From Eutreptiella sp. 'Long Island Sound 2002' (lineage: Eukaryota > Protista > Euglenida), in NCBI GenBank assembly GCA_964036045.1, contig OZ038378.1, forward strand, positions 199,888,001-199,952,000: a stretch of DNA of 64,000 nt, written 5' to 3'. This document shows, piece after piece, positions 12,264-24,300 of this stretch (positions are counted from its first letter, which is position 1; the number at the start of each line of letters is the position of its first letter). The notes below the pieces were generated by a model. It was not told the DNA's origin and ran no database searches. It saw only the letters and a program-made list of their open reading frames with translations. A program made the position numbers and the translations under genes.

Positions 12264-13570
12264 CTGTGATATTCCTAATTATAGCACACAGGCGATATTC
12301 CTAATTTAGCACTGGGTGATGCAAGCATGGACCAAATTCCTAATTTAGCACTCAGCTCCCTAGGAAAATGGACATATTCCTAATTTAGCACTCAACCCGC
12401 CTCCCTTTGCCTTTTGAAATGCACGGAACACAAGAAGCGCTTCACAAAACTCCACATTTGGTCTTTGTGCTCCTCAAGGTGAAAAGTCTTATTCATAAGC
12501 ATTGGTTGTGGCTTTACCCAACAAACAAGGCAACCACGTTGCCTTGCGCTTGGGGCGACCAGAAGCAGGAACCTGAGTTGAACTGGAAGTAGAGTCTTCA
12601 TTGGAAGAAGAAGCCTTTTCTTTTTCTTTCTCAATAGCACCTGCCACCTTTTGCCATTCTCTCAACTGCTGAACAGAAGTCTCAACCTGAGCCTCGGAGG
12701 GTTGGTTAGAAGAGCTACGTGGAGGGTCAACATCATTTTCTTCAGCCTCTTCTCCCTCAGGCACAAAATTCTGAGGAAGTATGACTTCCATAGTATCCTT
12801 CTTGTCACTCCAAAGGATTACCTTCATTCCCAAGTCAAAGGTGATGTTCTTCCATGCCTTACCTTGCTGTCGTTGTTCTTTGACGGATGCGTGCAAATAT
12901 ACTTCAAAGGCACTACGAATGTGCTTCTTGAAAGCAACATTAATGTGAGGTCCATAACTTGTAGAATAGGGGTCATGCCACCAGGGATGAACAACAAGAT
13001 CATCCATTTCCACCGGGCTTTCACCCACTCGCGAAACGATTCTGCTCGATGGACCGAGTACAAGTCAAGAATGACAATAGCATACTCCTCTCCCTGTCTA
13101 CGTTCTTCAAAAAACGGAGCAATGATAAGACGAAACAAAAATTTGAAAGTTTCCTCTGTGCACCAATGAGACGCAGACCAAACAGCTTGTCCCCGTGAAA
13201 AGCTTGCCCGATTAGCCGGTAGGCTCCGAACACTCTTACCTTGAAAAATCACTTGGAGCATGAGCTTCTCTCCCAACACATTTGCAGCCGGAGTGCTCGT
13301 TACTTGCCTACGGTCTCTATTGCCAACACACCTTGGGGAGCCAAGCGACAGGAACGCGCCGGAACAAGAATGACACCTGTGTCATCCAAATTAATGACCA
13401 TATCCTTACGAACATTGTATGCTTTTTCAGGCACCAGCGTCTGACCGCCTGTCACAGGCGCCCGCCCAAGGAAACCTGGCCAATATTGCTAATTTCGCAC
13501 TTTCTGGCCCTGAAAATCAGATATTCCTATTTTCGCACTCGGCCCAGTGCGATAATTAGGAATATCACAG
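12264..13570 (-). mobile_element. Internally deleted pogo/Tc1-mariner-type DNA transposon (1307 bp)
   Basis: 24-bp TIRs CTGTGATATTCCTAATTATAGCAC / GTGCGATAATTAGGAATATCACAG (1 mismatch), TA on both sides (12262-63, 13571-72), and subterminal ATTCCTAATTTAGCACT repeats. Confidence 0.9.
12489..13430 (-). pseudogene. pogo-family DDE_1 transposase pseudogene (frameshifted, DNA-binding domain deleted)
   Basis: Motifs: YNVRKDMVINLDDTG (D1), GEKLMLQVIFQGK, SHWCTEETF, ILDLYSVH (D2), IPGGMTPILQVMDL (D3), then a frameshift into INVAFKKHIRSAF. Confidence 0.85.
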
Positions 13571-13844
13571 TATTTCTACGCTTCTTTTGCTTCTGCCATG
13601 TTGCGGCGACCCATGAAGACTACAACTTTTACTTTTGGGCTCGGTTTTCCTCCTTTTGGGTTTTGGGCACAAGCCGCGGGCGGGAAGCATCCACATTTCG
13701 TTTGCCAATGAATGCCATTCTTTCTGCCCTGCCATTTTGACTACATTGGGCACACTTTTCTCAGGACATGGTAAGTTAGCGTGAAACGTGACTGTTCCAT
13801 CGGCCAAAACGGGGTTTGGAGAGTGGATTTGCACCCTTGGGGCC

Positions 13845-14071
13845 CTGCGCGCTGCCACGGCACGGCTCAAAGTCCATGACTACTTGTGTATTGCATGCAA
13901 CATGGTGTGTGGCTCAAATGAGCAATTTTCTGGTTCCCGAAAGCATGTGTCACATTGTACTTCACAGAGTGCTATGGGCGCAAGCCATTATTGTTTTGTT
14001 GCTTTTAACATCCTGCTTGCTTAAGTCCTGCTGACGAGGGTACCCAGAAATAGTATTGCAAATATTGGGAA
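13845..14071 (+). repeat. 5' pseudo-LTR of the PLE
   Basis: CTGCGCGCTGCCACGG...GCAAATATTGGGAA matches 20060-20286; no TG..CA termini, PBS or TSD. Confidence 0.9.
14031..14050 (+). ncRNA. Hammerhead-ribozyme-like core in the pLTR (second copy 20246-20265)
   Basis: CTGACGA-GGGTACCC-A-GAAA gives both conserved HHR boxes around a palindromic stem II. I could not fold canonical stems I and III by eye. Confidence 0.4.
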
Positions 14072-14154
14072 TTCATCAAGTTCAAGCCCCGCACGAAAGG
14101 CTTGTCCTAACGCCGCCCGACACTATCTCTTCGTGTCAATAATTTGATCATTCA

Positions 14155-15459
14155 TTGGCATTCTTCCACATTACTAACATGCCGCCGAAGCCAAAACCTA
14201 GCGCGAAACCCAATGCGAAGAAGGTCCTTTACTGCGAAGAACATGGCGTCAATTCAAGCCATGTTACGCGCGATTGCTATGTCCTCAAACGGAAACGAGA
14301 AGGCAAGGACGTCAACAAAGGTACTTGTGCCATTTGTGAAGGTGATCATTCCCTAAAAGATTGCCCTCTCGTTACCCAATGTATTGACGTCGACAAGGCA
14401 ACGGGGAAATTCAAGCCACGTGCGCGCGTTTGCTTCAATTGTGGTCGCCGTGGTTGTAAACCCAAGGATTGCCCTTATGAATGGGTGTTGAGCCGCATTA
14501 TCCAAACGGGAAAGGATTTTTTCCAAGCATTGCGTGATGGAAAAACGTGGATTGAACCGCCGCTTCCGCCGAGTTCTCAGTTGCGAAAGAAACACAAGCG
14601 AAATCCTAACGAAGACGTCAATGTTGATGCTTCCATGGTCAATGATTTGTCTATCATTGTTAGTGGTGTTTCCGATTGGGACAATACTGAAATGGAGCAC
14701 ATTAAAGAACGAGCGGATGGTTACACCAACATCACAATTGAGAATGGCAACGTTGTGGTGGGTTTTGACACCGTGGAGGCACGGCAAAATGCCACTTCTC
14801 TACTTACCGGATCCGTAACATCCAATGGTGATACTCTCTCCGTTCAATTTCCTCCACAACTCCCTTCTCATGATTCTTTTGTGCGTGCACTTACGCAACC
14901 TTCGTCCGTTGAAAGTTCGAGTGCATCTACATCTTCCCCGATGGACACGTTGTTGGATAAATTGGATGGACGCCTTGAGTCTCGCTTGAAGATCGCTATG
15001 GATGACCAAACCACGAAGCTCACGAAATCCTTTGATGGCATTCAAAAATCGTTGGAAAATTTGAACAACCGAATGGAGGTGCAAGAGAAAAAACAAAAGG
15101 AAAATGCCGATGCAATTTGTGATCTTCAAGGACGTATTCCTGGTACGGGCCGTGTCACCGAGGCATGGAACACACGCACATCTAAAACCCGCGACACCGG
15201 TGATCATGTTTGGGCCGTTGTGGGTGTGGGTGATGAGGCGCGTGTTATTAAGGCTCGTGTCATGCATACCGTGGAACAAAATGTGGGTGGAAAGCGTACC
15301 CAAGGAGCTCAAATCCAGGAAGTCAACGATGAAGATGTCCCCACTAGTGAGAATATTGTCATGGACAATGACCACATGTTCGACACCTTCGAGGAAGCCA
15401 AGCCTACTTTGCAACGTGCGACTGTCACCAAGCGGACGCGCACGCACGTTACTAAGTAA
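14155..15459 (+). CDS. PLE ORF1: nucleic-acid-binding Gag/ORF1p-like protein (3 Zn knuckles, RRM-like, coiled coil, Tudor-like C-terminus), 434 aa
   Basis: Knuckles CEEHGVNSSHVTRDC, CAICEGDHSLKDC and CFNCGRRGCKPKDC. RRM-like SIIVSGV...NVVVGFDTVEARQNA..LL.G....GDTLSVQF. Heptad-rich LLDKLDGRLESRL...LENLNNRMEVQEKKQKENADAICDLQ. Tudor-like GDHVWAV....KARV. Confidence 0.8.
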   Translation: MAFFHITNMPPKPKPSAKPNAKKVLYCEEHGVNSSHVTRDCYVLKRKREGKDVNKGTCAICEGDHSLKDCPLVTQCIDVDKATGKFKPRARVCFNCGRRGCKPKDCPYEWVLSRIIQTGKDFFQALRDGKTWIEPPLPPSSQLRKKHKRNPNEDVNVDASMVNDLSIIVSGVSDWDNTEMEHIKERADGYTNITIENGNVVVGFDTVEARQNATSLLTGSVTSNGDTLSVQFPPQLPSHDSFVRALTQPSSVESSSASTSSPMDTLLDKLDGRLESRLKIAMDDQTTKLTKSFDGIQKSLENLNNRMEVQEKKQKENADAICDLQGRIPGTGRVTEAWNTRTSKTRDTGDHVWAVVGVGDEARVIKARVMHTVEQNVGGKRTQGAQIQEVNDEDVPTSENIVMDNDHMFDTFEEAKPTLQRATVTKRTRTHVTK

Positions 15460-18400
15460 TGCACTCATACCAGACCCGACTCCGAACGGGAGCGATTGAG
15501 CGGAAACGTTGGACCTCACATATTCCCGATGCACATGATATCCCGTCACCAACACTCTCCGTGCATGAACACTCATTCGTGGAGTCACGCCGCGTATCTT
15601 CGCGGCCCAAACAATCGGTGGATCGATGGCAACCGGTTATTGCGGTCAAACGGAAAATTCGTGATCAACACCCGGATGCGTCGTGTACCACACCTACGTC
15701 GTGCAAAACTCGGAAGAAGGCCGGTCTCCGGCAACATCCTCTTCCAACAAACTATTGGAAACCATTGTGGAGTACACCCGTGACACGCCGACGCGCGAGA
15801 GCAAACAATCGAAATAAAAAATTAGGACGCCACATGCCTGTGTCACATGATGATGGTGATACTAATGAGAGCCATGACCACGATGCTAATTTGGCGCATA
15901 GTCATGAACCAACGTTGTGGAATTGTATCCATGTTCGTGGTGAGGGATTGGAAAAATGGGTCCATGATGTGGAAACAACACCTAATGAACCGGTTCCTTT
16001 TGAGCGTCAATTGCATGAAACACGCGCGTGGGTTGACCTCATTCAACATGCAGAACGCTTGCACATTCCGGAAGCACTGGGTGCAGCAAACAGTTTTGAC
16101 TTGCATTCGTGTCGTCCTAAGATCACTACTGCTGGTGCTTCCCGTCGGAAAAAATCACGTAGAAAACATGCTCGCCGAAGAAAACAAACCATTGTGCCGG
16201 GAAATCATGATGCCACCGATAATCCCCACCCATCTCCTCCACCCGCTCCACCGCCACTCCGCTCGGATGAACCTCTAAACTCCCCACCGGTATGTCCCCA
16301 CTCCGTTGCGAAGAGCTCTGATTCCACTGCCTCTTCGGTTCCATGGGATGTGTGGGCAACTGCCGACATGTTGCCTTCTTTGCGTCCTTTTCGTGATGAA
16401 GTTTTGGCATCCCCTGTTTTATCCACTTTGTGGACCGCCTTTGCTTCCACTGTGCCTCTCCTATCATGGGAAAGTGTGTCCGTCGATCATGCACTACAAT
16501 TTGTTCGTTGTGTGCGAGAGTTGACAAATGGCATGCAAACCCTGTTGTCCATGCATCCTGATTGTTGGTCGTTGCCTGAATCTTGGTTACAAACTTGGAA
16601 GGTCTCTCTTGGGGTACAACATACCATTGGTGTTTCGCCGTGCACAGTTTCTGATGGCTTATGTCATGCGGGTCTGGGTTTAAGTGAAGAAAAACCATTC
16701 GGATGTACTAACCTAAACCCCTCAGATGTAGGCCCAATCCTGTGGGCAGTGCAACCCCATCACCAATGGCATCATTTCTTACATCACCATCAACAATCCA
16801 GCCGCACATGGGTGCTGGGTGTGCCAGATGACAGGCCTGACTGGATTCATCAGTTAAATACTTACTGTGATCAGGGTGGGGCCTTTTGTGCCTTTACAGC
16901 ACATAAGCCTGGAGCCCATAAATTGTTACTGCATGTATCTGGAGGAAGAGTGGTGTGCCTGCCTGTACATGCTAACCCTTCTGTGACTGTGCATTGGTAC
17001 GTAGTCAACCGCTGTGATATTGATGTGCACCATATGATTGCTTGTCTCAGTAATTTAAGCAAACATGGTGCAGGGAAATGGACGATGCCACCAATGCACT
17101 GGCTTTGTACCCGTGGTCGCCTCATGGAGAGAGCACTGTTTACTGATCTGTGGATGATACTGAAAGCAGAACGTGCTCGCATGTTAAGTGAAGGTGTGCA
17201 GTGGCGTGACTTTGTGCAGAATATGGAACAAACTAAACGTCTGATCCCATTTGCGCCCTTCAACTGGCTTCGCCGCATTTTTGCGATTTCTAAAGCCTGG
17301 AATGTCCCGCTGGACCAGAAAGGCTCTTTCATTTACGCCTGTGTTTCTCCCTCTTCCTCAAAAGTGTACATTGGTCAAACTGGTTGTCGAACTGGGCGTA
17401 GAGCGTTAGCTAAACGGTTCAGTGAGCATTTAAATGGGGCTGCATTGTTTGCCAGAGGTAAGTCATATAAGAGGTTTCGCCATGAAAGCCCTGAGCGTTT
17501 TTATGAGGCCTTAAGTCATCTGGGTCGTGAGGATTTCATTATTGTCCCTCTGCAGTTCGTCAAACCGCGAGAAGGGGACACCAAGGAGATTCTCTGGATT
17601 CGGAAATGGGGTTCCCAGGTTTACAATATCCAGCACACCCGATGGCGTACTGGTAAACGCTGGCACTCCTTATGCGATGAACCTCTACCCAAACATGCCC
17701 TCACTACTAGCGAAGTCACTGCATTGATTCATCAACAGCTCAATAGGCCTCGTCGTGGACAGTCCCCCAATGACCTACTGCAGCTCTGGTTGGCTGCAGG
17801 TGGGGTCTCCAAACCACTGAAACAACGTCTTGGACATCGGCTTCGTGAAGTTGCCAAGGCCCGTGTCCACATGCATCTGCCTGCCAGAATCCCTATTCCC
17901 TATCCTGTGCACAATTCTGTTGATTTGTCCTGCTTAAAGAGTACAGTGCGGGACATCATCAATCACTTGCCTATACCTAAGTTAGTGCGAGCGTACCTCC
18001 AGACAGTTGTCTGCTTCGTGGCGCGCCGTCAGCAACCTGTGGGACGTGCCCTTTTCACCCAGGGTACAGCCCTAACCAAGGAGCAACTACATAAGCGCGC
18101 TTCCATGCAGTGTGCGTGTGCATCACTGCCTGATTCACTGCCCCGCGTTCAGGGGTGTGTCTGTGTCCGGTCTGGTCCTCAGCTTAAGCGTGTGGTGCCA
18201 GCACTTGCACCTACTCTCTGCCAGAACATGAAAAATGCTGCTCTGGGAAATAGGAAATACTTTCAGGATGCTTGCAACCAGGCCTGTGCTCGTTTACATA
18301 AATCATTCCCTGGTATTGCCAGCGATTGGAAATACTGGACCCGGAATGCTTTGCATCGGGCCATGGACCATATGCTGGATACCGCTGAGTCTGAGACCCC

Positions 18401-20021
18401 CACCTATATGCACCAACATCACCTTGAACAGGTCCGGGAAAAACTCAGTAAGCAATGGGAATGGATACCGGTTGACAAGAACCCTGGAAAAGGTTTCCTG
18501 GTCTGCAAAACCCTGTATGCCAAATTATTAGAAAAAATCTTCTACGACCCTGTGCAATTTGAGCCTGTTGCTTCACTGAATTCAAAAACTGATGCTATGA
18601 ATTTGGCTAAAGACTTACTGTTTCGTAATGCTATGAGGTGCGACGTTGAACATTTCTTTAAGAGTTCAGGTAAGACTGCGGCCCCATCAGCATTCATTTA
18701 CATCAAAAACAAATCTGATGAGTTTCATGGTGAGCTGAAGTGCCGCGTCCTGTTTTCTTACGCACGTCACCCGTTGAGAGCTATAGGAAAACAGGTGGGG
18801 CGAGCTTTGAATGTATGCATCTCTGTGGGTAAGTCGAACATGAATACCTTTGAAATGTTGAAAACGTCAGACCTTAAAGCATGGGTCCATGAAACTAATC
18901 ACAGCCTGCGTCACAAACACATTCGTGATCGTGATAACTTGAAGCTTTGGGAGCTGGATGTGCGTGAAATGTTCCCGAGGCTCCCAAGAGGCAATGTACA
19001 TAATGTTTTTGAGCGTCCACCTTCTGCTGATACCCCATGGTGTGCTGAATGGGGTGTCTGGGAGGCGTTCCAACTCCAAGGGTTGAGGGCCTGGGAGGCC
19101 CAGGGGCGTAGGTTTACTGCAGGGGCACCCTGGATTGCCTTGAACAAGTATTCCCGCAAGTGGGATCGGTTAGGGAAGGGTTATGACAATTTTTCCAACT
19201 TGTCTTGGACTGACGTCAGGAACTACATGATGTTCGATATCTTTTTTAATGACATCTTCGTTCTGGGGGGTCAGGTGCTCAGGCAGAAACGGGGGGTTGC
19301 GATAGGTGGATTTTGCAGCGCTCAGTGCGCGAGTATATATTGCATGCAGCGGGAGGACTTCTGGCACCGCCACTTGCAGGATAAGACTGTCCCATGGTGC
19401 CAGGACACCAACACACTGGGACGAAGACGAGTGGCGTTGTCCCTCCACTGCAGACCCTATCGCTTCCGTGACAATATGGTAGGAGTTAGATCCGGAAAAT
19501 CCAGTATTCAGTCTGTCTGCCAGTACTTTCAACGTGTGCTGGGCGTGGAATTGCAGGTGGAAGGTGAGGGCAAAACATGGACCAACCTGGAAGGATGCAT
19601 GTCTGTACATAACAGTCAGATTGACTTGCGGTTAAAAACCAAAATGACGTGGGATGTTCCTGAACATCGACGCCTTCTGCGTTTTCCTGATTGCTGCAGT
19701 CCTAACGCTAGGGCTGTACTCCAATCACTGGCACCTGCTCTCTGCCAAAAGGCACTTTTTTACGCCTCCACAGTGCAGGGAGTTACCAGTAATCTGTATA
19801 ATATTGTCCAGGAACTATCCTATAAGGGTTACCCCACTTCCTGGTGGGTCCCGCAACTATACCGCGTATTACACATGGCCCCAGGGCGACTTCAGGACCT
19901 GGGAGTGGATGACGCGGTCATGGAGGGGATGCCAGCTATTCGGGCCTCCCTGTCCGGCCTGTTGAAAGGCCCATGTGCACATTCCATGGGGCGTGACACA
20001 CAGGTATTTGGGTATTCATGA
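15459..20021 (+). CDS. PLE ORF2: GIY-YIG endonuclease + CxC linker + reverse transcriptase, 1520 aa
   Basis: GSFIYACVSPSSSKVYIGQT..R..EH...E..WI..YN (about 17322-17635); QCAC (18108-18119); VDKN; LWELDVREMF; RQKRGVAIGGFCSAQCASIY; YRFRDN (FRDN at 19464-19475). The ATG overlaps the ORF1 stop (TAATG). Confidence 0.92.
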   Translation: MHSYQTRLRTGAIERKRWTSHIPDAHDIPSPTLSVHEHSFVESRRVSSRPKQSVDRWQPVIAVKRKIRDQHPDASCTTPTSCKTRKKAGLRQHPLPTNYWKPLWSTPVTRRRARANNRNKKLGRHMPVSHDDGDTNESHDHDANLAHSHEPTLWNCIHVRGEGLEKWVHDVETTPNEPVPFERQLHETRAWVDLIQHAERLHIPEALGAANSFDLHSCRPKITTAGASRRKKSRRKHARRRKQTIVPGNHDATDNPHPSPPPAPPPLRSDEPLNSPPVCPHSVAKSSDSTASSVPWDVWATADMLPSLRPFRDEVLASPVLSTLWTAFASTVPLLSWESVSVDHALQFVRCVRELTNGMQTLLSMHPDCWSLPESWLQTWKVSLGVQHTIGVSPCTVSDGLCHAGLGLSEEKPFGCTNLNPSDVGPILWAVQPHHQWHHFLHHHQQSSRTWVLGVPDDRPDWIHQLNTYCDQGGAFCAFTAHKPGAHKLLLHVSGGRVVCLPVHANPSVTVHWYVVNRCDIDVHHMIACLSNLSKHGAGKWTMPPMHWLCTRGRLMERALFTDLWMILKAERARMLSEGVQWRDFVQNMEQTKRLIPFAPFNWLRRIFAISKAWNVPLDQKGSFIYACVSPSSSKVYIGQTGCRTGRRALAKRFSEHLNGAALFARGKSYKRFRHESPERFYEALSHLGREDFIIVPLQFVKPREGDTKEILWIRKWGSQVYNIQHTRWRTGKRWHSLCDEPLPKHALTTSEVTALIHQQLNRPRRGQSPNDLLQLWLAAGGVSKPLKQRLGHRLREVAKARVHMHLPARIPIPYPVHNSVDLSCLKSTVRDIINHLPIPKLVRAYLQTVVCFVARRQQPVGRALFTQGTALTKEQLHKRASMQCACASLPDSLPRVQGCVCVRSGPQLKRVVPALAPTLCQNMKNAALGNRKYFQDACNQACARLHKSFPGIASDWKYWTRNALHRAMDHMLDTAESETPTYMHQHHLEQVREKLSKQWEWIPVDKNPGKGFLVCKTLYAKLLEKIFYDPVQFEPVASLNSKTDAMNLAKDLLFRNAMRCDVEHFFKSSGKTAAPSAFIYIKNKSDEFHGELKCRVLFSYARHPLRAIGKQVGRALNVCISVGKSNMNTFEMLKTSDLKAWVHETNHSLRHKHIRDRDNLKLWELDVREMFPRLPRGNVHNVFERPPSADTPWCAEWGVWEAFQLQGLRAWEAQGRRFTAGAPWIALNKYSRKWDRLGKGYDNFSNLSWTDVRNYMMFDIFFNDIFVLGGQVLRQKRGVAIGGFCSAQCASIYCMQREDFWHRHLQDKTVPWCQDTNTLGRRRVALSLHCRPYRFRDNMVGVRSGKSSIQSVCQYFQRVLGVELQVEGEGKTWTNLEGCMSVHNSQIDLRLKTKMTWDVPEHRRLLRFPDCCSPNARAVLQSLAPALCQKALFYASTVQGVTSNLYNIVQELSYKGYPTSWWVPQLYRVLHMAPGRLQDLGVDDAVMEGMPAIRASLSGLLKGPCAHSMGRDTQVFGYS

Positions 20022-20059
20022 TGAGCCCCTCTCATGGCCTCCTCGCCGTGCCAGTTGCG

Positions 20060-20286
20060 CTGCGCGCTGCCACGGCACGGCTCAAAGTCCATGACTACTT
20101 GTGTATTGCATGCAACATGGTGTGTGGCTCAAATGAGCAATTTTCTGGTTCCCGAAAGCATGTGTCACATTGTACTTCACAGAGTGCTATGGGCGCAAGC
20201 CATTATTGTTTTGTTGCTTTTAACATCCTGCTTGCTTAAGTCCTGCTGACGAGGGTACCCAGAAATAGTATTGCAAATATTGGGAA
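20060..20286 (+). repeat. 3' pseudo-LTR of the PLE
   Basis: Matches 13845-14071, starts 38 nt after the ORF2 stop, and is followed by a short duplication (ATATTGGGAA). Confidence 0.9.
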
Positions 20287-21351
20287 ATATTGGGAAAGGG
20301 GGGCGACCGGGGTCCGAATGCGCGATCCGATCTTGGGGGGGGCTAGGGTTAGGAGGAGGCCCGATCCCGTCTCCGCGGACCGCCTAGTCCTCTAGCAGCG
20401 CTAAAAAAATCACCTGATGGGCTTCCCCCCAAACGGGGCCAAAGATGTTGGAGGCCTAGATGCCATCCTCTGCGTGGTTCAATAAAGGCGCTGGCACTAT
20501 GAGCAAAGTGGAAAGTTGTGAAAGATAAAGGGGTTCAATGAAATGTGACCAAGATCCAAACGAAGGCCCCATTTCTTTTTTGCGTAGGAGCGTTGAATCA
20601 GTGGCAAATTAAGTGAACGCCCCCAAAGTATGAAGATCCCGGATCGTATGTACCAACATGCAATTGTGAAATGAACCGTCGGCACATACCATCGCCCCCA
20701 TCCGTTTCCATATTCAATGTGCATGTTTTCAAAGGTGACTCAATCGAGATGGAGGCCATCAAACATAAGCGCTCTGCTGTGGCCAAGACCCAAAATCGCG
20801 ACGTCGCATTTGGCTTGGGCTTCAATTGCTCACTTTCACCACATGAGCAGCCTTGGTATGCACGCGAGAGGACCACTACTTCCATTCAGGTAGGTTAACA
20901 GACAGACACCTTGGGTTGTGCCTTTGTGCAAAATGACGTGCTTGTGCCTGTCATCCATGATTCTAGACCAATCGGACAAGAGCCTACTACATCCACTTGT
21001 GGACAATATATGTGTGATGAATCTTTTGAAATCTTGCGCATTAATCGCGCATTTTGGAGAAAAGGGCCCACCATTTTGAGGGTGAGTTGGGCTAATGTAC
21101 GTTCAAGGTTATGCTGAGAATAGCAACCTCTTCCCCCAAAATGGCCCCATTACCCAATTCCAAACCACGCGAAAAGCAACACGATGGATTCTATTGAAAC
21201 GTGGTCACACCGATCGATTGATTGGAGCGGCGGGTGGGGGGGACTCAAACACCAGTAAGTCCCCCGTGAGGGCGAGGCTTGGGGTGGCGCCTTGGGGCGG
21301 CGGTTGGTTTTTCGTGCGTTTCTCTACCTGCTTTGTTTTTGGTTTGCTTAG

Positions 21352-24300
21352 GACGTGTCCCCGCATGTTGACGAAAGGAAAGAGGATCCGCTTGTACAAG
21401 AGTTTGAGGAGCTGAAGCGGCAGTTTGAGGCTAAGCAGTTGCGGAAGTTGGCCAAAGCCAAGGTACCTAATGATAGGATGTTGGACGTTAGCATAGTGCA
21501 AACACGGCGTAGTCTACGTCAGAGATCATATCCGCCCCGTGGGTTGAGGGGCGCTAGCTGTTCATCGTGTTCGCATCCGCACCGTGGGTTGAGGGGCGCT
21601 AGCTTTTCATTGTGTTTTGGTCGACAACCTCTGTTCATGGGGGTATCCATAGGATGCATGGTGTTGAGTGTTTACGCCATTGACCGGCATGATCGTTGTG
21701 CGTCCATGTTATGTTTTCAAGGCCAAAGAAGAGCGCAGCAAGAAGAAGAAGAAGAAGAAGGAGCGGAAGGAGAATAGCAAGAAGAAACGAAAACAACATA
21801 AAATGAAAAAGAAGTCAAGCAAAAGGCACCGGAAGAGTAAATGTGACAGCACTACTAGTTCGAGCACCGACAGCGATACAGACACTGGCAATGATAGTGA
21901 CACAGATGGTAGTAGTGGAAGCAGCGGCCGGCGTTCCAAACGGAAAAAGGTATTTGTGTGGCTCTTTGTGCGATTACGTGTCAACTTCGGAATCATTTAT
22001 TTCAAACCCATCCCTCCTTGGCCATGTGGTAGACACCCAAACACGATGTCCATTGATTCTTGGCCTTGCGTGGTACAGGGGGGGGGGAAAAATGCGATTC
22101 GCATTTTTTCGCATTTTCCGCATTTTTTTTCGCATTTTCTGGGCAGGTCCCTTAGTGTAATGTTCAAGAGGATACATTCAAGTGGCATTGTGTAGTTCAA
22201 CTAAAGGGTAGTTTTGTAGTCAAGTCAGTGTTTGCATACCTTCCCAACACCGCCACTTTTGTTTGTTACATGGCTCCTTTTCCCTTAGACATGTCACATG
22301 CTATGCCCTCCCATTGCCCTCCTTCTGAGCCCACATCTGATGATGGAAATAGCCCACCCCGCCGCAAAGTAGTCTTCACATTGATGGAGCGATGGTGTCA
22401 ACAGATCAACATGCGTCTTGATAAACATAGGGGTTTTGGGAGTCCTATAGCATTTTAGCAAAACCGCATTTTATGCCGCATTTTTTCTCGCATTTTCCGC
22501 ATTTTTTCCGCATTTTTCCGCATTTTTTTCCAATCCCGGCGACCGCATTTTTCCCCCCCCCCTGGTGGTAGCGGGAAGGAGGGCGGTCGCAAGATTGAAA
22601 CGAATTTTCCAAACAACTTGTTTTCCATGTGACATTGAGGCCTTCTTGGTAGAATTTTTTTTGGTTAAGGATAACCCTTAAAGACAACGCCTAGAGACCG
22701 CCAACCGCCGGCAACAACCGCCAACCGCCACCCACCGCCAACCGCGACCCGCCAACCCCCACCCACCGCCGGCGTTGGGCCATAAATGTCGGAAGTTTCG
22801 TGGAAATTGTCTCGGTAGCGTTCAAATTTTCGAATTTCATGCGGTTTTAGAATGGTAGCCACCTTGCGATTTGGAGGGTGCATATGCAGCCACTAGAGCA
22901 AAGGCACCAAGTCTGAGAAGGTGTAGCTTGGGAGCTGTGTTGTGGAACGCGCCGCATGGAAGGAAGAAATGGCGTTTCCATTAGCAGTGCCATTTGTTTG
23001 CCTTCACATGATTTCCTACTCCGTATCATGTGCCAACCATTACTGGGCCTTTGTCACCGTACTAGGGTTGCCCTTTGCAAATTTGGACTAGTGGCCCCCT
23101 CCCGCTTTCACCAATGTCCCTCTGTCCTAGTTGCCTAGGCTCCAGCATAGGCTCCAGCATAGGCTCCAGCATAACATGCAACACAACCTCAAGTCCCTGT
23201 CACACCATTTTTGTCGATGTTTGTGCTCTTTTGTCATGTCATGTCTTTGGCACTTTGGCTGCATTTTCGCAGTTAGGGCTCCGGCTGAAGTCTATATGGT
23301 GACGGTGGAACAATTACCCACTACAATTGCCCACATCAAACTGAAAGCCGCTTTCTCAAATAATTAATTGACATCCTGCGAAGGGCAAGTAGGTCGGTGC
23401 CAAGTGTCCATGAAAGTCCCTGCAAAAGCCAACCCTGTTGCCTTCTCTAGAAGGTTTCCTTGACCGTCAGGCCCATGGGACGTGCCACGTCTATGCACTA
23501 TGGGGATCGGCCTAGGGGGTGGAGGTGTAAGAAAAAGCGTTGAAATGGCCTAGGAGAGAGCGACCAGCGCAAGCGCAACGTTTAGGAAGCGGACGTGCAC
23601 AAGCAAGGGTGTGGATGCGGTTTTTACAAGCGCTAGGAGAACAGCAAGCAATGGGAGTAGCTAATTGAGATAAGAGGCAAGCCGAAGCAGAAGGAGGGTG
23701 AGACATTGTTGCGCGCAACGCTCTAACACCTTGGCGTGAGAGGCACCGTGATGCTTTGTGCCACAGCGTAAGTGTACGATGGAGCTGCAGCTCAAGGCCA
23801 TAGAAGACGAAATTCAGTTTCACAAAGATATGGCGATGACGAAGGCGTTACAGCAGGAGGCGCGGAATGAGGAACCTTTACGAGCAGGTTCCCGCACCGT
23901 TCCAGTCGCAATTCATTTGTGGGGTGTCCGGGGTTTTTCTGTTGATGTTGACAACAATGGGCCCTGATCAATGAAGCAAAGCCGAGCATAGGATCCCACC
24001 CTAGATACCACCAAAGAGATACTTAAGATGACCATTCGGCTGACCATAATCCCTACATCAGCAGAATATCCTTGGGGGGCAGCAAACATGTGAGTTTCTA
24101 TTTGAGGGTCACTTGGATCCAACAAAGTGTGGAGGGGGGGGGCAGGGAGGAGTTGCGGAGAGGTTGCGGGTGTGTGCGGGTAGGTGGATGTGTGTGTGGG
24201 GATGGGGGGGGGCAGTGGGGGGGGTGCGTAAGGGGCGATTTCCCGCCAATTCTGGTTCACCCTTCCTCCCGCGTACTAGTCCGCTTTGTCTTTGTTGCAG

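Follow-up and report, generated by a model that had tools for sequence, protein, structure and literature searches.

This study focused on a 6.4-kb retroelement found at positions 13842-20286 of a 64,000-nucleotide (nt) stretch of contig OZ038378.1 (positions 199,888,001 to 199,952,000) from Eutreptiella sp. 'Long Island Sound 2002'; the whole of this stretch is referred to here as the window. The element is complete, lies (as do all its parts given below) on the forward (+) strand, and is very likely a full-length, recently transposed Penelope-like element (PLE) of the N-terminal-endonuclease (Naiad/Chlamys) clade, of Chlamys type, which resides in a euglenid and has two separate open reading frames (ORFs), ORF1 and ORF2. 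It consists of a pseudo-long terminal repeat (pLTR), ORF1, ORF2, and a second pLTR, and the ORF2 polyprotein comprises, in order, a basic tail, a predicted PCIF1-like fold, a GIY-YIG endonuclease (EN) without CCHH, a CxC region resembling the TERT RNA-binding domain (TRBD), and a TERT-like reverse transcriptase (RT). A first-pass annotation, made from the sequence alone, had proposed matching 227-bp pLTRs, two intact ORFs, an N-terminal GIY-YIG domain lacking CCHH, a CxC linker between EN and RT, a PLE-type, telomerase-related RT (together the permuted order that defines the Naiad/Chlamys clade), a young and potentially active lineage, and a euglenid host, and all of these proposals were borne out. 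Its claims of evolutionary novelty fared less well.

The two direct repeats (13842-14071 and 20057-20286) are each 230 nt in length and are the sole long direct-repeat pair within positions 12500-21500. Their strictly identical run is ~227 nt, with one mismatch near the 5' edge (blastn). The upstream repeat was recognized, by its identity to 20057-20286, as a 5' pLTR that duplicates the final part of the element's 3' untranslated region (UTR), and the downstream repeat, by repeat identity and by comparison of copies, as the 3' pLTR that forms the end of that UTR. A 5' UTR (14072-14178, from a reading of the sequence) leads from the pLTR to ORF1 (14179-15459), which begins with ATG at 14179, ends with TAA at 15457-15459, and specifies 426 amino acids (aa). 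ORF2 (15459-20021) begins with ATG at 15459 and specifies 1520 aa. Both ORFs are unbroken, and the stop codon of the first overlaps the start codon of the second in the sequence TAATG (15457-15461), with one base shared, which puts ORF2 into the -1 frame with respect to its upstream neighbour. The element terminus reads ...ATATTGGGAA, and this 3' end is fixed among copies, whereas the upstream repeat has a 5' boundary that shifts by ~20 nt from copy to copy, giving repeats of 221-240 nt. No second copy of the element was present elsewhere within the 64-kb window.

The class assignment rests on the features of ORF2 and on its predicted structure. An exhaustive HMMER search with ORF2 aa 601-1520 recovered 458 relatives, mostly fragments, the best full-length example being a protein from a JGI metagenome (P0001, 1613 aa) that was 37% identical and had an equally long N-terminus. 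Word-indexed protein searches, for which this same segment and alignment A1 served as queries, matched only the genome's own copies. The GIY-YIG core (aa 621-728, 17319-17642) was located by motifs, profile, model, and a weak Pfam match; it carries FIY at aa 624-626 and VYIG at aa 636-639, and in the profile alignment its catalytic residues R653, H657, E710, and N723 correspond to R, H, E, and N of I-TevI. The Pfam GIY-YIG match on ORF2 was below threshold (E 0.18), the family profile matched I-TevI at E 3e-4, and the model of aa 621-728 superposed on I-TevI with Z 11.4 and a root-mean-square deviation of 1.9 A (VIA-align). In the relatives P0088, P0061, P0100, and P0154 Pfam places GIY-YIG N-terminal to the RT, and several relatives attain or come close to the cut-off with such an N-terminal match. 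The stretch from GIY to YIG has a single, non-conserved Cys and is not preceded by a Cys cluster, and since there is neither a Cys pair in the core nor a Cys-rich linker, both CCHH and the CX2-5CxxC linker are considered absent. The CxC motif, which is zf-CDGSH-like, occurs as CAC (aa 885-887) and CVC (aa 900-902) and is kept in the family consensus, while the DK motif is represented by DKN (aa 1006-1008) within VDKNPG (aa 1005-1010), with a family consensus of DKNxG. Both motifs fall in aa 855-1060 (18021-18640), a region delimited by motifs and by model alignment, which superposes on the TRBD.

The RT (aa ~1080-1480) lies C-terminal to the GIY-YIG domain in the same protein, and its fingers, palm, and thumb were placed at 18702-19960 from motifs, profile, and predicted model. 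Motifs 1-2 (KNKS...KCRVLFSY...HP, aa 1083-1105), motif A (ELDVREMF, aa 1165-1172, with D1167), motif B (aa 1279-1291, with GVAIGG..SAQ at aa 1279-1289), and motif C (RFRDN, aa 1335-1339; window 19461-19475) could all be recognized, and the 114 aa that separate motifs A and B, with helices and strands in the model, may be an IFD-like insertion. The family profile also matched Drt2, diversity-generating retroelement (DGR), and group II RTs at E ~4-8e-3, with RYrDN aligned to RYCDD. An AlphaFold model of ORF2 aa 601-1520, built from a 34-sequence alignment, had a predicted local distance difference test score (pLDDT) of 86 and a predicted template modeling score (pTM) of 0.77. When this model was compared with known structures, the top 17 matches in the PDB (Foldseek) were all TERT, with E 3.5e-9 to 6e-5, as were the top 14 in Swiss-Prot AFDB; VIA-align likewise had TERT in all of its top 17 places (Z 12.4-18), with group II RT, LINE-1 ORF2p, and R2 at Z <= 11.4. 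The superposition on TERT begins at the TRBD and extends from model residue 255 onward. With TERT ranked first in three independent libraries, the predicted structure supports an RT that is TERT-like rather than LINE-, LTR-, or DIRS-like.

The direct terminal repeats, a gag-like ORF1 with zinc knuckles, and an overlapping second ORF would also be expected of an LTR- or DIRS-type retrotransposon, an assignment that would make the 230-nt repeats true LTRs, ORF1 a gag, and ORF2 a pol gene. However, neither Pfam nor fold searches revealed a protease, RNase H, integrase, or tyrosine recombinase, the nuclease is of the GIY-YIG type, and the closest relative of the RT is TERT. In addition, comparison of copies shows a ragged 5' repeat edge, in contrast to LTRs, and no target-site duplication (TSD) was seen. 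We therefore regard this explanation as next to impossible, and the element as a PLE.

The genome contains at least six copies of the element at separate loci that are >= 99.9% identical, and both ORFs are intact in five of these. Copies were taken from ENA assembly ERZ25074135 by exact-protein look-ups, the window locus corresponding to contig ctg9622. An identical 426-aa ORF1 protein is specified at five loci on five contigs, each time with ORF2 behind it, and the five full-length copies align without gaps over 6.44 kb, differ by 1-5 substitutions each, and have ORF1 and ORF2 open; shorter gene calls in the other full-length copies are an artefact of the gene caller. Chance is ruled out because six near-identical copies sit at different loci, and segmental duplication is opposed by the flanks of the five full-length copies, which are unrelated to one another. 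The sixth young copy (L013, 1751-7339) is 99.96% identical and keeps both pLTRs and ORF2, but has suffered an 858-nt in-frame deletion within ORF1 that removed codons ~111-396. An older copy (L012) is 98.6% identical, with a broken ORF2 and ORF1 present, and a decayed copy of a diverged sister family (L011) has ORF1 followed by ORF2 in unchanged order, sharing 52-77% aa identity with the window copy in ORF1 and 43-78% in ORF2, the N-terminal extension included. One position, window 17006, is C in the window copy alone and G in the four other full-length copies, as well as in contigs of runs X4 and X6.

Selection was gauged from Nei-Gojobori counts of nonsynonymous (pN) and synonymous (pS) differences between the window copy and L011, for which synonymous sites are near saturation. 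The values were pN 0.24 and pS 0.66 for ORF1, 0.35 and 0.72 for ORF2 aa 1-295, 0.26 and 0.81 for aa 296-615, 0.14 and 0.77 for the EN and linker, and 0.17 and 0.81 for the CxC region and RT. On these counts purifying selection acts throughout the coding segments, including ORF1 and the N-terminal extension. Judged by its copies, the family is young and has recently transposed, and it is very probably active at present.

ORF1 is, from the comparison of loci, a genuine part of the element. It could be supposed that it is a host gene captured once, in the window copy, by an ancestrally single-ORF element. Most of the EN-bearing PLEs described in PMC8557442, as far as that account goes, do have a single ORF, no ORF1 could be recognized upstream of ORF2 in L001 (P0152 family) or L010, and L013 is missing most of its ORF1. 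Such a capture is nevertheless extremely unlikely, and copy comparison, with loci whose flanks differ, refutes it for the window family: the identical protein precedes ORF2 at all five loci, and the order of ORF1 followed by ORF2 recurs in the older copy L012 as well as the diverged sister L011, a linkage whose presence in other copies argues directly against a one-off event. The constraint on ORF1 points the same way, as does the occurrence of an upstream ORF in a much more distant family that this genome also harbours and in a metagenomic contig. The former (L003, family P0157, 3977-10987) has identical terminal repeats of 294 nt, an ORF1 of 485 aa in which two zinc knuckles near the N-terminus are accompanied by a stretch resembling a coiled coil, and a 1580-aa ORF2; in the latter (L002) the upstream ORF ends 237 nt before ORF2. 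A profile comparison between ORF1 of the window family and that of L003 matched the zinc knuckle alone (E 0.058). Given the sister family and the analogous ORF1 of L003, the two-ORF architecture appears to be old within euglenids.

The ORF1 product is best seen as a Gag/ORF1p-like protein that presumably binds nucleic acid. It has two zinc-knuckle-like motifs, CX2CX3HX4C at aa 50-62 and CX2CX4CX4C at aa 85-98, which depart from the CX2CX4HX4C of gag-like zf-CCHC proteins, with a Pfam zf-CCHC_4 match below the cut-off (E 0.07), and a coiled-coil-prone stretch at ~aa 255-320, where weak coiled-coil-type Pfam matches extend over aa 255-359 (Myosin_tail, E 0.006); a C-terminal region follows. Its language-model neighbours were CCHC and RRM clusters with scores <= 0.76, which is a lead only.

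The manner in which ORF2 is translated bears on the relationship of the two ORFs. A Gag-Pol-like fusion of ORF1 and ORF2, made by -1 frameshifting or by read-through of the stop codon and not by reinitiation, would suit the -1 frame of ORF2, and PLEs of the Athena type can have an ORF1 that is separated by a frameshift, according to the portion of PMC8557442 that deals with them. Also, in L003 the two ORFs share a frame, with 51 stop-free nt between the TGA of ORF1 and ORF2, making that junction a candidate for read-through. In the window family, however, frameshifting is excluded because a TAA at 15453-15455, one codon ahead of the ORF2 ATG, closes the ORF2 frame, and a slippery site would not fit into so short a gap. 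The sister family retains the TAATG junction (L011, 8687-8691), although the adjacent bases have diverged. A fusion is thus unlikely, and reinitiation at the overlapping start codon is preferred.

The long N-terminal extension of ORF2 has two parts. The first (aa 1-295, 15459-16343), delimited by alignment A2, composition, and pN/pS, shows little conservation and has many P, R, S, and H residues, and within it a basic cluster resembling a nuclear localization signal spans aa 229-242. The second (aa 296-620, 16344-17318), delimited by alignments A2 and A3 and by a predicted model, is a conserved globular domain that recurs in a Eutreptiella transcript protein and in several further families, with W513, W541, M543, P544, and P545 invariant and W-x-M-P-P at aa 541-545. 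Its model had a pLDDT of 72. Foldseek found weak matches to it, all of which were N6-adenine methyltransferases (RlmJ/DUF519, PCIF1, and CcrM), and an Atlas shape search returned RlmJ and Dam; an Atlas feature search with the N-terminal domain was uninformative. With VIA-align, PCIF1/CAPAM scored Z 9.6-10.3 over 180-195 residues, the next match being Z 6.7, and in a wide, Foldseek-independent search PCIF1 was the sole chain at Z >= 8 among 48,161. The superposition pairs ORF2 aa ~307-535 with PCIF1 residues ~417-670 (Z ~10) at a sequence identity of 12%. At the level of sequence no similarity to PCIF1 was detected, as the A3 profile matched no methyltransferase among PDB sequences and Pfam was empty. 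The catalytic motif of PCIF1 is NPPF (PMC8868631), and this motif ([DNS]PP[FYWH]) is missing in all 10 homologues of the aa 296-620 domain, among which only W-x-M-P-P is conserved. The resemblance to PCIF1/CAPAM therefore lies in the fold of the methyltransferase domain, and the ORF2 domain differs in having no NPPF, no WW domain, and no similarity at the level of hidden Markov models. The model suggests a PCIF1-like fold that probably lacks N6-methyltransferase activity, and a role in binding RNA or the cap is speculation. A literature search found no publication linking PCIF1 to PLEs.

Several results weigh against regarding the locus as an intact, mobile PLE with a nucleic-acid-binding ORF1. 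Pfam RVT_1 failed to detect the RT and Pfam recognized no zinc knuckle above threshold in ORF1, in both cases with the whole ORF as well as cut-out segments, and Pfam gave no support for an RRM in ORF1, aa 145-235 being without a match even at E <= 10. Inspection of the junctions of six insertions revealed no TSD at any of them. The estuary metatranscriptome contigs that matched the element were short and corresponded to the pLTR and ORF2, not ORF1, and because one of them continues into the genomic flank of copy L005, carry-over of DNA is possible. Finally, motif C of the RT is DN and not DD, and the catalytic competence of the enzyme is judged here from the recent spread of the family and the selection acting on it.

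This last point raises the question of whether the RT is catalytically dead and the family mobilized in trans by another PLE, of which the same genome has several families. Among the 34 relatives that cover motifs A-C, the sequence R-[FY]-x-D-N is found in 32 and D-D in two, both of the latter being long-branch outliers in an unlabelled tree. As the DN form occurs in all the PLE families that were seen in the genome, there is no indication of a DD-bearing helper. The five full-length copies have each kept ORF2 open, and the RT segment is among those strongly constrained (pN 0.17 versus pS 0.81). Mobilization of a dead enzyme is accordingly very unlikely, and in view of the evident mobility of the family and the strong constraint on its RT, the DN form of motif C is most likely functional.

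The sites of insertion offer some hints of how the element integrates. Sequence resembling GGGAA directly follows the 3' end at three of six junctions, including those of copies L007 and L012, and at the 3' junction of the window copy the terminal ATATTGGGAA of the element (10 nt) is followed directly by a second, tandem unit at 20287-20296. Together these hint at microhomology priming or template slippage. Neither a hammerhead ribozyme nor any other Rfam family was detected at E <= 1 in a scan of positions 13000-21500; most Chlamys elements likewise have no canonical hammerhead. A short telomere-like stretch (ctagggttagg) is present at 20336-20350, 50 nt 3' of the element, and may be due to chance. 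Genes with Phage_integrase (PF00589) and hAT dimerisation (PF05699) domains adjoin copies L012 (L012:1-468) and L007 (L007:805-1224), so other classes of transposon are found near PLE insertions. Around the L003 element, a long tandem array with a period of ~32 nt or a multiple of this, and units 94-97% alike, lies upstream (L003:1-2655), and a DUF5906 (PF19263) gene downstream (L003:12496-14091).

The euglenid nature of the host is indicated by two observations. P0014, which represents another PLE family in this assembly, falls into one cluster, at >= 90% identity, with the Eutreptiella gymnastica protein A0A7S4CSN5, presumably an entry derived from a transcriptome; among the clusters of 20 homologues that were consulted, a single one had a member bearing an organism name, and that name was E. 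gymnastica. Within the window, at 2478-2503, the genomic DNA has the sequence cactttctgagtgtctattttttt beside a T-rich tract; we take this to match the euglenid spliced leader, and use it solely as a clue to the host. In estuary metagenomes the element was detected at a word share of 0.44-0.73, and in estuary metatranscriptomes it was detected in part.

A plausible cycle for the element can be proposed from its layout. Transcription would start in the upstream pLTR and end at the terminus of the downstream pLTR, yielding a terminally redundant RNA, and such an RNA would explain why the pLTR length is nearly constant (221-240 nt), the 5' edge ragged, and the 3' end fixed. A transcription start in the pLTR would be in keeping with Chlamys-3_cRei, the 5' UTR of which spans the boundary of pLTR and body in the published description (PMC8557442). 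ORF1p would be translated first and, as a zinc-knuckle and coiled-coil protein of the Gag/ORF1p kind, presumably serves as an RNA coat or chaperone, after which a minority of ribosomes would reinitiate at the overlapping AUG to produce ORF2p. The GIY-YIG domain of ORF2p would then nick the target DNA, and the TERT-like RT would copy the RNA from the 3'-OH of the nick (target-primed reverse transcription). The PCIF1-like domain, without NPPF, would most likely be a module binding RNA or the region near the cap, not a methyltransferase. A more specific and doubtful version may be entertained tentatively, in which the Chlamys-type PLEs of euglenids constitute a distinct lineage whose ORF2 protein recruited a catalytically altered PCIF1-like domain that binds the cap-adjacent adenosine of the element's own capped (possibly spliced-leader-capped, A-initiated) mRNA, providing cis-preference, and whose RT uses Asp-Asn instead of the near-universal Asp-Asp.

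The presence of this element extends the EN-bearing, permuted clade (Naiad/Chlamys) to Euglenozoa (Discoba), a new host supergroup, and supports either an ancient, eukaryote-wide origin of the clade or its horizontal spread. To our knowledge, retrotransposition of PLEs is still without an in vitro model. The family described here is young, multi-copy, and intact, and would for these reasons be a practical system for studying the process, its host being an alga that also turns up in metagenomes from estuaries. Two features are worth the attention of specialists, namely the R-F/Y-x-D-N form of motif C across an evidently mobile clade, and the conserved PCIF1-like fold ahead of the endonuclease.

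The precise relationship of the element to known PLEs was considered in several ways. The defining features of Naiad/Chlamys, an EN N-terminal to the RT, CxC, and a DK motif, are described in PMC8557442 and match those found here; in the same account, Chlamys elements have DK followed by a variable third residue (Craig et al. 2021, PMC8557442) and are 3.3-8.2 kb in length, and the hosts of the N-terminal-EN clade are animals, the green lineage, and a slime mould. The literature search found no published PLE from Euglena, Eutreptiella, or Euglenozoa. Among AFDB fold clusters the best matches to the model of ORF2 aa 601-1520 were a series of A0A388* models (E 1e-27 to 1e-13), annotated as CCHC-type, GIY-YIG, RT, or RRM domain-containing proteins. 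This accession block belongs to Chara braunii, the best matches being models from that species and other algae, and placement in the class rests on features and structure.

Two described elements are of particular relevance to the claims of the first-pass annotation that a separate RNA-binding ORF1 and an N-terminal extension of ~620 aa had been gained, resulting in a LINE-like, two-protein layout new to these elements. Chlamys-2_cBra of Chara braunii has an upstream ORF that encodes a gag-like zf-CCHC peptide, and Chlamys-3_cRei of Chlamydomonas reinhardtii has an N-terminal extension (both in section 9 of PMC8557442). Because a Chlamys element with a zinc-knuckle ORF1, and another that is N-terminally extended, have already been published there, the claim of novelty was overstated. 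ORF1 itself is real, but is not a new gain for the clade, the upstream ORF of a described Chlamys family refuting that claim in part, and the RNA binding suggested for it comes down to two sub-threshold zinc-knuckle-like patterns; the extension is likewise present, with pN far below pS, but has the precedent of Chlamys-3_cRei. The two-protein layout as a new acquisition was not upheld.

Compared more closely, Chlamys-2_cBra and the euglenid element share an upstream ORF, with putative zinc knuckles in the euglenid case, ahead of the EN-RT ORF, but in the published description the former has a canonical 3' hammerhead ribozyme, whereas none was detected here, and its host is a streptophyte and not a euglenid. 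The consulted text of that description does not mention a PCIF1-like domain, a TAATG junction, or a DN motif C, and the ORF1s of the two elements were compared by description only. The similarities to Chlamys-3_cRei are the pLTRs, a 5' UTR across the pLTR/body boundary, an extension before the EN-RT, and recent activity. In the account available, however, that element has a single ORF, a 5' intron, and a PHD insertion, while the euglenid element has two ORFs, no evident intron, and, in its extension of ~620 aa, a conserved globular domain. Metazoan Naiad elements, as characterized in the same source, have the same order of EN, CxC, and RT, an IFD-like insertion that may have its counterpart here, and no canonical hammerhead ribozyme, but keep CCHH, the CX2-5CxxC linker, and DKA, whereas the euglenid element is without both zinc motifs and has DKN.

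More distant parallels are found in the ORF1p and ORF2p of LINEs (long interspersed nuclear elements) and in the ORF1 of Athena, where a separate upstream coiled-coil protein that binds nucleic acid accompanies an EN-RT protein, as is proposed here. LINEs differ in using an APE or RLE nuclease, in contrast to the GIY-YIG domain and TERT-like RT of the euglenid element, and ORF1 has no shown sequence relation to L1 ORF1p. Coupling of stop and start codons through UAAUG is known in some non-LTR elements, such as SART1. Set against these known systems, what is new is the euglenid host, a TAATG overlap that is kept in two families, a predicted PCIF1-like fold without NPPF, and a DN motif C in 32 of 34 relatives, and the last three are traits specific to the lineage.

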